Positions 4,756-61,615 of a stretch of DNA of 64,000 bases are shown piece after piece (the first letter of the stretch is position 1; each line of letters begins with the position of its first letter). Under the pieces are notes generated by a model. It was given only the letters and a program-made list of their open reading frames with translations. It had not been told where the DNA came from and did not search any database. The stretch is taken from contig NIVC01003004.1 in NCBI GenBank assembly GCA_002269645.1, forward strand, positions 1 through 64,000. Reading direction: 5' to 3'. The position numbers and the translations under genes were made by a program. The stretch is from Macrostomum lignano (Eukaryota).

Positions 4756-7700
4756 ATGAGCCGAGTGGCCAGGGACTTCTGCAGCTTTTTGTCCGCATTC
4801 CTAGCCGGTGTGTGCCTGGCGCTCGCAATCCACCAGTTTGTCTACCTTGCTTCTTACACAACGAATGCTCAGGTAGCCTCAGGTGCCGACTGCTACGCTC
4901 GAGAGGGCGGCTGCTCTCTTAACGCCAAGGTTGACTTGAAGTCGAAACACAGAGACGCAAAATCTGGCAATGCGTCACAGATCAGAATCTTCTGCTGGAT
5001 TATGGTGCCATACATGATGCCTCTAATGACCATGATGATCATAAATGAGTCCTGGGGTCCCAGATGCAACGGATTTGCTTTTGTGGCTCCTCGGATAGCC
5101 GTTGGTGAACTGAATTTGCCACTAATTGGTAAGTTACGCTGCCTACAGTGCAATTCGGCCCGAGTGGCAATTAAGCAGTATTTTCTTTACAAAAAGGTTC
5201 TTTCAGTATTTTTGTATTGTATTTTGATTTCTGCTGTCAAGATAGTACAGGACATTCGAAAATTCTTGTCACTTGTAGCAGACTTTTTGATGCATGGAAT
5301 TTTCAATTTATTTCAGGTTTTATTTATACTTGTGTCAGAAGAAGACATGAAGGGCAATATAAGTTATTACTTAAACAAATTAATTTTCACTGATTTTTTT
5401 GTTCAGATAATAAAATGAATGAGCTGGCTTAACTTTGTGTAAAATAGTGCAAAAATTGTGTGAAATAATTAAAACTTCGACTTAGATCATGCCCTAGCTA
5501 AGCCCCAGTCTAGCATATGCACAGATTCTAAAATAACTGGCCACTCAGGCATATCCTTAGTACGAGGTAAAACAGCTTTCTACTTTCAGTTCAGTAGCAA
5601 AACCGAATACATAAGCTATTTTATCAAAATAATGGCAGCTGAAATGACTTTGATAAGTTTAAAAGCCCAAGCTTGCAGGCGTAAACAACTGCTAATTGGG
5701 TCAGCAGTATGTACGTTAGCCAGTCCACTGAAATGTACATGGCAGCTTTAGGCTGGAATTCCGATAAAGGCAATAAAAATCAAGGTGGGAGGGGGTAGGA
5801 GTAGTAAGGCTTAAGCCTAAATGGCCTGGGCTTTAAAAATGCATTAAAACTGTTCTGTTTACCTTACTACTGAACTGAAAGTAGCTTACACGCAAGTGTG
5901 ATGAGTGGCGCATCTAGTTATTCTAGTATCTGTGAGCATCCGCAAAAATAATAGCAGCTTGTCTTGTATGGTCATTTTTTTCAACAAAGCGACATAGCAG
6001 AAAAAGTGTTTTGTACATTTATTTTACTCAGCACAGATGCCATTGTAAATAACTATTACCCAAACACAGGGACGAGTCAAAACGGTCATTATTACACCAT
6101 TGAGCGACTCCACCCGCAGATTTTTTCGAATTGCTAGGTGCAGGCATACTGCTATGATTTTATTAAACTAATTAAAAATTTGAGTGCGCTCCGAAACATG
6201 AGTACGCTAACTATATAATTTACCAAGAAATTTGTACACGGGTTAAATGTACATTGAGGAGCAGCTGTGGAATAATGGCCAAAATCAATTGCTATTGCAT
6301 CTGGGTGAAAGTACATGTACACTGCATAAGCGTCCTATACTTACGAAGTTCTAGACCGCAATGTATAACAAACACCAATCCGCAGACGTGAACGCCCCAG
6401 CATTCGAGGCGAGCCAGTTTCACACGGTGGAATGGAAACGAATTTGGCTGTCAGCCTGGCAGCTGCATAGCAACGGAGCAGAGCAGAAATACGACTATTT
6501 CCTGCTGGTGCGCTCAAAAAACTACGTGGTCGTGGAAAATGCTCGCCGCATGTTGAGCAGCCTGGACCCCAGTAAGCCGTTCATGCTTGGCAGGCGGATG
6601 CAACGGAAAGTCATCGAACTCCAGGGTGGTCAAGAGAGCTACGATGCCGACTACCTGACAGCGGACGCCGGTATTGTACTATCGAATGGCGCCTTCGCCA
6701 AGATGGTGACGCTCGGATTCAGTGGCACCAGCTCTGATCCAGTCATCCGACTGAACTGCGGCTCGCATAGCGTGACCAAGTCCTACGATACCCAGCTGTG
6801 TGAGTCAGCTCACTCGGTCAATCGAATTTCCAGTCAGGCTCGAATCCTGATACTTACTTGCTAGCCTTTACCCTGCTAAACAAATCCAAATAAGTATCGA
6901 GATTTATTATGTAAATTGGGTTTCTGCATTAACTAATCAGACCCCCAGATTCACAGGGGAGCGTTGATACAAGGTAGACTGATAGGCAATGGAATTAAAG
7001 TTTTAGCTATCGAAACTCAGTAGGTGACTAATACTGAAGCAACTTTTCTATTCTTTCTTTCTTTCATCCAAGTTTAGAGCATGCGTAAAATTGTCCAGCT
7101 ATTTTGTAATCAAAGCAGTTCTCAGTACTAATTAGTAATATATTACAGCGGGAAATTATCTAAGGATAAATGTTGAAATTTTCAGCGGCCTGCCTGAAGA
7201 GCCTGGGCGTAGAAACGATGGACAGCCGGGACAGCCGCGGCCGAGAGCGGTTCCACCCGGTGCCGCCTGGCAACCTGCTGGTGGACGGCCGAATGCCGGC
7301 CTGGCTGAGAAACGCCAGCTACTACAGACCGGTCCGAGCGGTACGGGTGCTCAGCGGGGGCAGCTAAAGTAGAAAGACCAAATTTTTCCCGCACTAAATT
7401 CCCAGTACATACAAGTTTTACTCACCTTCTGGACTTTTAAATTCAAAAATGAAGCATGTATTTTCGTCTGATTTTTTAATTTCTTGGAAGCAAGGGACTG
7501 TGTGTACCCTGGGGCACTTTAAGCGACATTGTCACACAACCGGTGAAAGGCATTACTGCCCATTCCGCCGACTCCCCTGAGCAGGCACACAAGCGCACGG
7601 ATATGTACGCAGTCATACGCAGAGGCACACACTCACACAGGAGTGTACAGCGATCCTTATTTATCGTTAGGCATGTACACTTCACTGTGCCTTGGGGTTG

Positions 7701-8115
7701 GACCACAAGGTCGTTAATTGCACGAGCAGAGCCAAGCCGAGATTCCGATTCAGCTCCGAATTAATGTGACGGCACTTGGAATCGAGCCTGCGTCGCTGGC
7801 ACATAACGCCGTGCTGGACCACTGGGGATACTTCATCCTCATATTTGCCCAGTCGCTTTCAATGTCATCTGATGAAGATATGAGCTCGAGTAGAACAACT
7901 TTGAGCAGTGATTAAGTGGTTATCAGATTGAGAACGACCTTCTGCTTATTTTAGTGGCTGAATTACATGTAATATAACTGAATTTAATTTTCCAGTGCCT
8001 GAGCTGTCCTAGTCCCGAGTCCGTCACCTTCTTCGACGTCACTGAGTTTCACAAGACCGACGCGCTGATTCGCCACATGGGACCGGCGCTGCTTCCGTAC
8101 AAGACGACAGTCTGA
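4756..8115 (+). CDS. Core-1 beta-1,3-galactosyltransferase (GT31, C1GALT1/Cosmc) family protein lacking DxD; probable pseudoenzyme, ~353 aa
   Basis: Exons 4756-5128, 6386-6799, 7186-7340 and 7996-8115 join in frame (phases 1,1,0; 1062 nt) at GT-AG sites. N-terminal TM, then RIFCWIM..WGPRCN, YDYFLLVRSKNYVVVEN..DPSKPFMLGRR, AGIVLS, DTQLSACLKSLGV..DSRDSRGRERFHP, CPSPESVTFF. Confidence 0.85.
5520..5934. mobile_element. MITE with CACAGAT(A/T)CT terminal inverted repeats
   Basis: Left end CACAGATTCTAAAATAACTGGCCACTCA; right end TGAGTGGCGCATCTAGTTATTCTAGTATCTGTG; second internal IR CTACTTTCAGTTCAGTAG / CTACTGAACTGAAAGTAG. Same terminus type at 62447-62684. Lies in intron 1 of the GT31 gene. Confidence 0.6.
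7484..7830 (-). mobile_element. SINE family B (tRNA-like head), copy 1
   Basis: Reverse-complement match over ~330 bp to 19905-20275; B-box-like GGCTCGATTCC near its 5' end. Confidence 0.7.
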
Positions 8116-8187: not shown

Positions 8188-8493
8188 GGGGTTTTAGCCG
8201 AGTGGTTAGAGGGTCGGACCCACGACTTGAAGGTGGGGGGGGGGTTCGATTCCCCATGGCACTGGAACAATTTGTTTCCTTGAGCAAGACACTTGACTCT
8301 GCATTGCTTCAGTTCACCCAGCTGTAAAATGGGTGCCAGCATTATCTGGGGTAGTTGAGGGTGTGTGGCGACCCCCCAGTCCTTGGACTGAACAGCCGTA
8401 CGCAGCCTTCAGATGCACCGCGCAATAGCTGCGGCTGAGGTGTCGGTTGCACATCTGGCCCAATTGGGGCAGGTGTAATCAATGTTATTATCA
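8188..8493 (+). mobile_element. SINE family A (tRNA-derived, CORE-like domain)
   Basis: A box TAGCCGAGTGG, B box GTTCGATTCCC, then CCTTGAGCAAGACACTT..CAGTTCACCCAGCTGTAAAATGGG, shared 3' body and an (ATT)-like tail. Confidence 0.85.
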
Positions 8494-9443: not shown

Positions 9444-11617
9444 TTACACAAATGTCCCCTTCTCGCTGTTGGGCTCTCCGGTGGCGGATAGCATCGGGTC
9501 GGCGTAGTCATTGTCGCGGATGGGCCTGGAATTCTTCGCGCTGGGACTGGCGCGATAGCTGTCCCACAGTTGCTTCACAACGTCGCTCACGACCGGGTCG
9601 CCGGCATTTTTGCTGATTATTCGTAGCACAAATGCGCCGTCAGCGCGCAGGTGCTCCTCCAGGAAGTCTCGGAGCATTCGGCGCTCCTGCTGGTCAGCCG
9701 GGGTGATGTACTTTTTAATGGTGGCGTATCGTCGCTTGGATAGCAGGGTCCACAGGAACCATGCGATTGCGTCCACAATGGTGATGATGGACACGAAGAC
9801 GAACAGAAACCAAAGAAATATGTACGCCTGTCGTGTAATTGGCAGGTGGCTAGTATTAGACTAGGACACACATGAGAAGTTATGGCTACTGATTTCACGT
9901 TGATTAAACCCTTGATTAATTCTTCATATCGGCTATCGTATTTTTTAACACCCTGTACTCTATGTAAAAACCTTTTATCCAAGGCTCACCTTTTCGTTAA
10001 ATAGGTTGACAACAAGAACGCATTGCAGGGTCCTCGGGTGCATATTTCCAAGCACTCGAATGTCAAAGTCGCACAGAGTGACTCTAGGAAAGTGCCCAGT
10101 GTGGTGCCAGTCGCGATTGTTGATCAGATCATTCAGCACCTCCCAGCCGTAGAACTTGTAGTCCGTGCCAAGGAAGCTGTTGAGCAGGAAGAACTGGCCC
10201 ACGACATTGGCGATAAACAGCAGCTTGATGCCGAGGTACATCATGGTGAGATAGTTGCCTGTCTTCGTGTAGCCGCAGAACAAGATGCGGAATATGAGTC
10301 GCTTCGTGCGCACAATAAGACCGTACTTCTGAGTGCGTTGCTTCACTATGGTGAGCTCGATGTGTCGCGTCAGCAAAGCAACTTTCTCCTGACGTTTCTG
10401 CTTATCATCCTCAAGGCAGTTTAAAGCGGTGGAAACCAGGTCGCTGATGTGAATTCCTGTGCAGTGGGTTGAAATATTGAGAGTTATAGCGCGAGTTTAT
10501 AGCTCAGTCGCTAGCATGCACATATTAGGTTATCTAGGCCCTACCTATGTGAATGCTCATGTCTGAATTTGGCTTCCAAGACTCTTCTATGAGCGTAATT
10601 GTCGGCTTTTACACTGAAGTACATATACCGGATGCTACAACTTACCGACCTGTAACTTTGTCACTAATTTTTTTACCCTAAATAGTACGAATACACACGG
10701 TAATAGTAAATATTTATTAGTTTGAGTGGTTGTTCCAGCAATAATATTAATAATAATTAATTACACCTGTCCCAATTGGGCCAAATGTGCAACCGACAGC
10801 TCAGCCGCAGCTATTGCGCGGCGCATCTGAAGACTCCTACGGCTGTTCAGTCCAAGGACTGGGGGGTCACCACACACAGCCTCAATTACCACAGCTAATG
10901 CTGGTATCCATTTTACAGCTGGGTGAACTGAAGCAATGCAGAGTTAAGTGTCTTGCTCAAGGACACAAATTGTCCCAGTGGGATCGGGAATCGAACCAAC
11001 GAACTTCAAGTCGTGAGTCCGACGCTCTAACCACTAGGCTACAACCCCTTCAATCCAGCTGGCTACAATCCAGCAATAGAAACAAGCAGTCATAGAGAGC
11101 GCGAGTTGTTTATGAGAAAAGCACACAAGCCATCTGTTCATTAGAATCCTGAACATTAACCAACGCATATTCTGGTCTGTATAACCGACATGAACCTGTA
11201 ATCGAGTTAGTCACCTGACTGCCAGTTCAGCAGCTTCCAAATCGCACTAGGCAAGTAGAACAGCAAAGCCTGCAGAGCCAGCACAAACGGCACCCACTGG
11301 TAGTAGGTGAGCTCTTCTCTGCTCCGATCCAGTTTGTCGCTTGGAATCGACTCGTTCTCTGGCACATAGTAGGTGTTCTTCACCCAGCAGTAGTTCTCGG
11401 CGAATTGCTCCCAGCCGTCCTTGAACTCGGGCGGGATCCAGCACTGAACCGGATCTCCAACCAGGTACATTTTCGTGCCGATTATGGTCGAAATGAAGAT
11501 TATAATAATCGGCGTATAGTACGAATTGATTCGGTCGACGGCATCCTCGTCGGAAATCCGGTGCTTGCGGCTGGTGAACTTCAGCTCCTTCACCTTGTCA
11601 AAGAACCCCGTATCCAT
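9444..11617 (-). CDS. inx: Innexin (gap junction/hemichannel protein), ~417 aa
   Basis: Exons 11617-11215, 10456-9990 and 9827-9444 join in frame (1254 nt). Hallmarks: DEDAVDRINSYYT, GDPVQCWIPPEF..WEQFAENYCWVKNTY, YYQWVPFVL, FPRVTLCDF, QCVLVVNLFNEK, YIFLWF. Confidence 0.97.
10740..11048 (-). mobile_element. SINE family A copy (innexin intron 1)
   Basis: Full-length reverse-complement match to 8188-8493, with a TAA-rich tail at ~10740. Confidence 0.85.

Positions 11618-14087: not shown

Positions 14088-45020
<30,933 letters not shown>

Positions 45021-59023: not shown

Positions 59024-61615
<2,592 letters not shown>

Follow-up and report, generated by a model that had tools for sequence, protein, structure and literature searches.

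Does an invertebrate possess a counterpart of Cosmc (C1GALT1C1), the vertebrate protein that serves as a private endoplasmic reticulum (ER) chaperone of T-synthase (C1GalT1)? This question is raised by a gene of the flatworm Macrostomum lignano at positions 4756–8115 of the window analysed here, a stretch of 64,000 nucleotides on contig NIVC01003004.1 (assembly GCA_002269645.1, positions 1 to 64,000, forward strand). According to recent work on invertebrate T-synthases, these enzymes fold unaided and invertebrates have yielded neither a homologue of Cosmc nor an equivalent (PMC11005171, PMC9065035); work on mollusc T-synthase likewise reported no Cosmc homologue (PMC11005171). An earlier reading of the letters alone (the original prediction) took the gene for a catalytically dead T-synthase paralogue and proposed that it encodes an ancient or convergent Cosmc-type chaperone or partner subunit. 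Our analysis indicates that the candidate is probably a Macrostomum-lineage duplicate of flatworm T-synthase genes (C1GalT1, glycosyltransferase family GT31) that has turned into a pseudo-glycosyltransferase, a reading to which we assign a probability of roughly 0.7.

Four exons joined on the + strand, with GT..AG at every junction, give an in-frame coding sequence of 1,062 nucleotides that specifies 353 amino acids and ends in a TGA stop codon (Table 1). The predicted protein is a homologue within the GT31 C1GalT1/T-synthase family, with similarity across the whole catalytic domain of the glycosyltransferase A (GT-A) fold. Specifically, its sole solved-structure match is Drosophila C1GalT1 (7q4i; E 2.6e-15, candidate residues 74–344), and a profile built from 80 DxD-intact enzymes scores it 166 bits. 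The match to the Pfam Fringe family (PF02434) is barely over threshold (26.4 bits; cut-off 21). With its four exons, regular junctions, open frame and C1GalT1 homology, the gene is the intact four-exon GT31 gene that had been described. The prediction had also allowed that other exons might restore the DxD motif; a search of the 64 kb window revealed no alternative DxD-bearing exon and no second or tandem paralogue.

Exon 1 encodes a short basic N terminus, followed by a signal-anchor, a stem and strand beta1. Because of this N-terminal signal-anchor, which was judged by inspection, the product is expected to be a type II membrane protein that faces the secretory-pathway lumen. The protein carries three N-x-S/T sequons and ten cysteines in all, retains five of the six conserved family cysteines, and also keeps the residues of the GT-A scaffold. 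UniProt holds three M. lignano models of the gene (P0001, P0278 and P0279; 261–262 amino acids), each named N-acetylgalactosaminide beta-1,3-galactosyltransferase. These models comprise exons 1 and 2, break off where exon 2 ends with no stop codon, and thereby omit 91 C-terminal residues, among them the lost C-terminal His site. V19L and N37D are the only differences among the three, and the start and sequence of exon 1 are the same as in P0278.

We used the residue roles and numbering of the fly C1GalT1 structure paper (PMC9065035) to examine the active site. The sequence LVRSKNY, said to stand in place of the enzyme motif KADDDTY at 6505–6525, is encoded exactly there when aligned to 7q4i, such that the Mn2+ ligands Asp181 and Asp183 and the ribose-binding Asp182 (D-D-D) are replaced by R-S-K. 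The same alignment confirms the change of SFHY to TFFD, in which the metal/diphosphate ligands His324 and Tyr325 become Phe and Asp. Further replacements affect the diphosphate-binding Arg152 (Ser in the candidate), Gly151 (Ala), Leu155 (Glu) and the conserved Thr of the CW.MT motif in strand beta1 (Val), and the glycine loop SGGAGY reads TADAGI, with an Asp gained and Tyr225 lost. The claimed change of the acidic ED pair to YD stands in part. The xED motif reads S-Y-D, so the Glu is indeed replaced by Tyr, but the Asp of the pair is kept and corresponds to Asp255, the catalytic base of the fly enzyme (PMC9065035).

Several other functional residues are also retained. Glu150 (a uracil contact) is kept and Lys158 is present as Arg; the acceptor-contacting Tyr218 and Trp300 are unchanged, and Ser220, which also contacts the acceptor, is present as Thr. 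Tyr304 is lost. Across the 80 DxD-intact enzymes, 42 alignment columns are invariant at a level of 85% or more; the candidate conserves 21 of these and mammalian Cosmc 27. A set of 12, all around the donor site, has been lost by both proteins. The alignment thus shows that the site for UDP-Gal (uridine diphosphate galactose) and Mn2+ is dismantled in the predicted protein, for which we infer that galactose transfer by the metal-dependent mechanism of the family would be impossible.

Metal-independent GT-A enzymes, for example the GT14 core 2 N-acetylglucosaminyltransferase, use basic residues to handle the diphosphate. The exchange of D-D-D for R-S-K puts basic residues exactly at both metal-ligand positions, and the Arg and Lys might neutralise the diphosphate in a glycosyltransferase that no longer needs a metal ion, particularly given that the catalytic-base Asp, Glu150, Lys158 (as Arg), Tyr218, Ser220 (as Thr) and Trp300 are all in place. 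We consider such an enzyme very improbable, since the changes at Arg152, Gly151, Leu155 and His324–Tyr325, the loss of Tyr225 and the Asp gained in the glycine loop all argue against it. Moreover, mammalian Cosmc carries the same Asp-to-Arg change and is non-catalytic according to the literature.

The origin of the gene is indicated by its introns. All three are identical in position and phase to those of two other M. lignano genes, the canonical P0273 (locus L001) and P0293 (locus L008). The first intron (phase 1) interrupts LPLI/D in the candidate, LPSV/A in P0273 and LPLM/R in P0293; the second (phase 1) interrupts DTQL/S, DVNL/G and DFML/G; and the third (phase 0) interrupts VRA/C, LRE/G and KA/C, respectively. 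Introns 1 and 2 also lie at the same position in both tandem genes of the cestode Hydatigera, a comparison that covers positions only and not phases. By contrast, introns 1 and 2 are absent and intron 3 is present in Lingula, Patella, the dead copy of Gigantopelta, both units of the nemertean Tubulanus and a fish. In these five non-flatworm genes, the catalytic domain lies on one uninterrupted exon and only the third intron is shared. By this comparison intron 3 is ancient, as every animal C1GalT1 gene that was compared carries it. The most economical explanation has introns 1 and 2 arising in the flatworm lineage, and the candidate originating by duplication of a gene already equipped with them.

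A rare cysteine change points in the same direction. Only 2 of 112 family segments, those of the candidate and of M. lignano P0021, have C-x-x-C-x-S in place of the vicinal Cys-Cys disulfide motif (G..CCSD), and P0293 carries a similar change (ACHRGCVS). Likewise, the best pairwise scores of the candidate are with M. lignano proteins: 115 bits with the canonical enzyme, and 102 and 101 bits with two further paralogues. Human C1GALT1 reaches 85 bits, and nearly all of about 120 Cosmc sequences fall between 24 and 54 bits, with three lower. The matching introns, the rare Cys-Cys change and the fact that the best matches all come from M. lignano together argue for an origin inside flatworms. Thus, the candidate appears to belong to a Macrostomum-specific C1GalT1 subfamily, in a species that has at least five C1GalT1-like gene types.

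To weigh the resemblance to Cosmc, we fetched about 120 Cosmc sequences from the database. A human Cosmc sequence served as a search query only, and a human C1GALT1 sequence served as a label only and was replaced by database sequences in the final placement. The Cosmc-like motifs that the original prediction had named are real when compared with database Cosmc (FFL[AV]RP, GGIVLS, EDKQLA.CLK..GV and VTF), but they are few. In 26 alignment columns that tell Cosmc apart from the active enzymes, the candidate agrees with Cosmc in 4 and with the enzymes in 10, and shows neither state in the other 12. A dead domain from a limpet likewise shows 4 of 26 Cosmc-type states, which ties with the candidate for the highest count among non-Cosmc sequences. 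Furthermore, the Arg found where DxD has its first Asp varies within vertebrate Cosmc itself, with Tyr, His, Gln, Leu or Thr in other vertebrates. A Cosmc profile made from 113 sequences scores the candidate 56.7 bits, placing it at rank 94 of 99 non-Cosmc family members (median 104).

The two proteins do share a number of features. Each is a C1GalT1-derived membrane protein of type II (by prediction in the case of the candidate) in which DxD, the C-terminal His, the Thr of strand beta1 and the Tyr of the glycine loop are gone and the xED Asp is retained. They also score about equally against the active-enzyme profile (166 bits for the candidate, 174 bits for Cosmc). However, the two deletions that characterize Cosmc, in the EGR loop and in the W..Y..YYP segment, are absent from the candidate, whose alignments contain both segments. 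Its DSRD..GRERFHP..W..YY region is of the enzyme type, as had been proposed for DSRD..GRERFHP, and exon 3 retains an enzyme-type region that vertebrate Cosmc has deleted. Conversely, Cosmc keeps the vicinal Cys-Cys and the interface residue Tyr336, both of which are lost in the candidate. The gene structures differ as well, in agreement with the original prediction: the candidate has four coding exons with introns of the flatworm type, and vertebrate Cosmc has a single coding exon (PMC8022947). Apart from the loss of DxD, none of the testable hallmarks of Cosmc membership is found in the candidate.

We placed the candidate in the family by using maximum likelihood (ML) distances, neighbour-joining (NJ) trees with 200 bootstraps and a self-written evolutionary placement program. 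The pendant branch of the candidate is long (about 1.3 substitutions per site), and its smallest ML distance is 2.03, to M. lignano P0008, compared with distances of 3.3–4.1 to Cosmc. In three data sets, placement on the Cosmc stem is worse than the best placement by 18.8, 13.7 and 8.4 log-likelihood units (lnL), and resampling of estimated log-likelihoods (RELL) gives this stem 0.005–0.025 where computed. Cosmc is also not among the sister groups recovered for the candidate in the 200 NJ bootstraps, of which about 86% are tabulated. The GT31 phylogeny that had been suggested as a check on Cosmc affinity therefore yields no grouping with Cosmc by either approach. The stem of the M. lignano pair P0021 and P0293 lies within 0.9–1.5 lnL of the best placement, and edges to M. 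lignano tips alone collect 0.19–0.30 of the likelihood weight and 0.34–0.42 of the RELL support.

These results bear on the proposal that the candidate is a true member of the Cosmc lineage, namely an ancient, intron-bearing chaperone gene older than the split between protostomes and deuterostomes. DxD is lost as in Cosmc, and several replacements are identical or similar: beta1 Thr to Val, Lys to Leu together with Asp to Arg (FLLVR versus FFL[AV]R), glycine-loop Tyr to Ile, D.QL[SA].CLK and VTF. The tied top count of Cosmc-type states fits the proposal, as does one GT31 phylogeny in which C1GALT1C1-like genes were proposed for amphioxus and Hydra (PMC8022947). In addition, when the protist outgroup is omitted, the stem uniting Cosmc with a hemichordate dead domain is just 2.3 lnL worse than the best placement. 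Yet the shared replacement states vary within Cosmc itself, the Cosmc profile ranks the candidate below almost all active enzymes, and the stem of Cosmc proper fares poorly by likelihood and by bootstrap. The candidate also lacks both Cosmc deletions and the CCS that Cosmc keeps, and it carries two flatworm-specific introns and a cysteine change specific to M. lignano. Descent from the Cosmc lineage is therefore hardly credible, and of the two words offered originally, ‘ancient’ fails. By contrast, ‘convergent’ fits the duplication within the flatworm lineage that is indicated by the introns, the cysteine marker and the best matches. On this evidence the likeness of the candidate to vertebrate Cosmc is convergent, not inherited.

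Several observations weigh against a Macrostomum origin followed by retention as a pseudoenzyme. The best ML placements are not among M. lignano genes but on the stem of the protist outgroup (diatom and Telonema among others) or with dead mollusc paralogues, although we read these top placements as long-branch attraction rather than as relationship. The placement program used a rate matrix derived from BLOSUM62, four gamma categories, an NJ backbone with ML branch lengths and RELL resampling, and did not amount to a full ML search. Sequence comparison alone argues against Cosmc but leaves the sister group of the candidate unfixed. With respect to the gene model, exons 3 and 4 lie outside the UniProt models and are supported by homology and by conserved intron positions. 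None of the database's M. lignano proteins from NCBI corresponds to this gene, and a word-indexed search with the full protein returned the candidate itself and two distant matches, with no transcript-derived (Logan) protein. With the 261-residue UniProt model P0001 (exons 1 and 2) rather than the 353-residue protein as query, a profile search run exhaustively against 1.84 billion representative proteins found nothing above 34% identity beyond the candidate’s own cluster and no orthologue in other species.

The failure to find an NCBI-sourced protein model, a transcript-derived protein or an orthologue would also be expected of a functionless relic, that is, an unexpressed or dispensable duplicate that has merely not yet acquired a stop codon. 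In further agreement with a relic, M. lignano is rich in recent duplicates and has several C1GalT1-like gene types, and half of the most conserved positions of the family are altered in the candidate. However, the chance that a frame of 353 codons would stay open at the base composition of the candidate’s introns is about 5e-11. The GC content at third codon positions is 0.69, compared with 0.40 GC in the introns and 0.66 at third positions of active paralogues. Three genome copies of the candidate differ at 0–2 of 261 residues, none within the catalytic domain, and are no less alike than the genome copies of active enzymes, which differ at 0–6 of 355 and at 3 of 246 residues.

A relic is thus unlikely, because some 1.3 substitutions per site have left the frame open, all six splice sites usable in sequence, the framework of cysteines in place and the third-position GC of coding type, and because the changes cluster in the donor site rather than being spread evenly. 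The intact frame despite divergence, the coding-type base composition, the conserved cysteines, the similarity of the copies and the concentration of losses at the donor site lead us to infer that the candidate is maintained by selection.

If the candidate is indeed a maintained pseudo-glycosyltransferase, it may work as a non-catalytic binding protein. In the likeliest form of this role, it would pair with an active T-synthase paralogue, of which M. lignano has several, and could complete a dimer with it, regulate it or help it to fold, a tentative proposal to which we give about one chance in three. Pairing is preferred because the enzyme of this family forms obligate homodimers across a very large interface (PMC9065035) and because two dead copies within GT31, Cosmc and CHPF, act on active relatives (PMC8022947). 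A point against this partner mechanism is that the dimer-interface residues Tyr336 and Tyr339 are replaced by Ala and Arg, respectively, and that the C-terminal interface tail is short. As a second option, the protein might hold N-acetylgalactosamine-bearing peptides in the manner of a lectin by using its partly kept acceptor pocket, a role suggested by the retention of Tyr218, Ser220 (as Thr), Asp255 and Trp300. We consider both this lectin-like role and a metal-independent activity, which the Arg and Lys at the former Asp positions would suggest, less likely than the partner role.

Other systems offer precedents of varying closeness. The active T-synthases (Drosophila C1GalTA, 7q4i; M. lignano P0008/P0273, P0021, P0293 and P0297) are homologous to the candidate across the whole catalytic domain and share with it the signal-anchor, most cysteines, the DSRD..GRERFHP region and the catalytic-base Asp, and P0273 and P0293 have an identical gene structure. 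The candidate differs from them by RSK for DDD, by FD for HY, by changes at about half of the near-invariant positions and by its very long branch. Cosmc, the established private chaperone, resembles the candidate as described above but is of independent origin. CHPF and CHPF2 are GT31 copies with a modified DxD that have been described as stabilising partners of active chondroitin synthases (PMC8022947). They belong to another GT31 subfamily and have another architecture, and are thus a precedent for the mode of action only.

Copies without DxD also came up in this search from one cestode, three molluscs, one hemichordate and Telonema. Like the candidate, the cestode, mollusc and hemichordate paralogues derive from C1GalT1, have intact frames and show a degraded DxD and C-terminal His, and they are annotated as T-synthase-like. 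Their replacement residues are unlike those of the candidate, and they are scattered over the tree. Such copies point to a recurrent origin, and they probably arose separately. An extension of the partner model would be that the flatworm lineage independently evolved a T-synthase-specific helper, with the dead paralogue serving as an obligate partner or chaperone for at least one active M. lignano T-synthase, and with the dead paralogues of molluscs, cestodes and hemichordates representing further independent cases. We regard this extension as a long shot. If it were true, the pairing of an enzyme with a helper made from its own dead copy would be something that evolution has arrived at repeatedly for core 1 O-glycan synthesis, in vertebrates and beyond.

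Some of these loci merit individual description. In Hydatigera taeniaeformis (UYWX01000199.1, locus L003, 5001–12801), an annotated 580-residue ‘protein’ (P0009) corresponds to two tandem genes, of which the upstream one is DxD-less (KAHDTNY, VTFSN) and the downstream one is canonical (KADDDTY); both have the flatworm intron positions. The dead cestode gene thus sits in tandem with an active partner, whereas the candidate has no paralogue within 64 kb. Among molluscs, Patella P0056 (domain 1), Gigantopelta P0141 and Pecten P0120 have a T-synthase-like annotation but neither DxD nor the C-terminal His, and Gigantopelta P0141 has an ordinary three-exon structure. The N-terminal domain of P0145 from the hemichordate Glandiceps talaboti is also DxD-less (FLKVEVDTF, ITYHNV) and groups with vertebrate Cosmc in the NJ and ML backbones, which would fit a deuterostome rather than a vertebrate origin of the Cosmc lineage. 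A transcriptome protein of Telonema subtile (P0006) has two tandem C1GalT1-like domains, both without DxD (FVHFRLETY, FGQFNTDAY). In Lingula anatina (locus L002, 303–1696), a second divergent C1GalT1-like gene (27–37% identity) lies directly upstream of the T-synthase gene. Finally, M. lignano contig NIVC01000363.1 (locus L008, 1–13672) carries a cluster of three C1GalT1-like genes of the P0293 type, comprising two near-identical copies on the + strand and one more divergent copy on the – strand (6895–4132), which is partly annotated as a protein of 109 residues.

Because the candidate would not be a Cosmc orthologue, it leaves standing the view that invertebrates have no Cosmc. Rather, the same kind of protein appears to have arisen again in a flatworm, in the form of a membrane-anchored T-synthase copy whose donor site is gone and whose scaffold is kept. 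The database matches suggest parallel events in several further invertebrate lineages, whose dead copies carry the annotation of ordinary enzymes. Tallies of ‘T-synthase genes’ from invertebrate genomes would then overestimate enzymatic capacity. A literature search on pseudoenzyme glycosyltransferases together with Cosmc found nothing. M. lignano is amenable to RNA interference and would be a tractable system in which to ask whether dead T-synthase copies act on their active relatives.

Table 1 Features of the candidate gene and of its 3′ boundary, in window coordinates.
Feature	Position	Strand	Description
Exon 1	4756–5128	+	Residues 1–124; phase-1 donor after LPLI
Signal-anchor FCSFLSAFLAGVCLALAIHQFVYL	4777–4848	+	Exon 1; hydrophobic segment of 24 residues
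Strand beta1 IRIFCWIMVP	4981–5010	+	Exon 1; conserved Thr of CW.MT replaced by Val
Intron 1	5129–6385	+	1,257 nt, GT..AG, phase 1
Exon 2	6386–6799	+	Residues 125–262
UDP-contact loop EASQFHTVEWKR	6406–6441	+	Exon 2; fly Arg152 replaced by Ser, Leu155 by Glu
Former DxD site FLLVRSKNY	6499–6525	+	Exon 2; R-S-K at 6511–6519
DPSKPFMLGRR	6565–6597	+	Exon 2
Degraded glycine loop YLTADAGIVLS	6652–6684	+	Exon 2
xED site S-Y-D	from 6781	+	Exon 2; Asp of the catalytic base kept
Intron 2	6800–7185	+	386 nt, phase 1, after D-x-x-L (DTQL)
Exon 3	7186–7340	+	Residues 263–314
ACLKSLGV		+	Exon 3
DSRDSRGRERFHP	7221–7259	+	Exon 3
AWLRNASYY	7299–7325	+	Exon 3
Intron 3	7341–7995	+	655 nt, phase 0, after VRA
Exon 4	7996–8115	+	Last coding exon, ends at the stop codon
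VTFFDV (enzyme SFHYV)	8023–8040	+	Exon 4; C-terminal His-Tyr site lost
Dispersed repeat	8214–8397		Just 3′ of the stop codon; outside the protein, marks the 3′ boundary of the gene

Further copies of the dispersed repeat that follows the stop codon occur in the window at 10837–11032 (inverted) and at 7697–7826 (inside intron 3), and in locus L008 at 9466–9662 and 7024–7156; the copies are 83–90% alike. One copy (10979–11048, – strand) reaches the Rfam threshold for tRNA, which is the only Rfam match, and ARAGORN called no tRNA near the candidate gene. The repeat looks like a tRNA-derived short interspersed nuclear element. Elsewhere in the window, open reading frame fragments at 24592–38574 (– strand) belong to a large dynein heavy chain gene that probably extends in both directions, and their Pfam matches comprise DHC_N2, AAA_6, AAA_8, the microtubule-binding stalk and lid domains. 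An open frame of 561 amino acids at 59416–61101 (+ strand) encodes two C1 (phorbol-ester/diacylglycerol) domains and a kinase domain, and is similar to protein kinase C.

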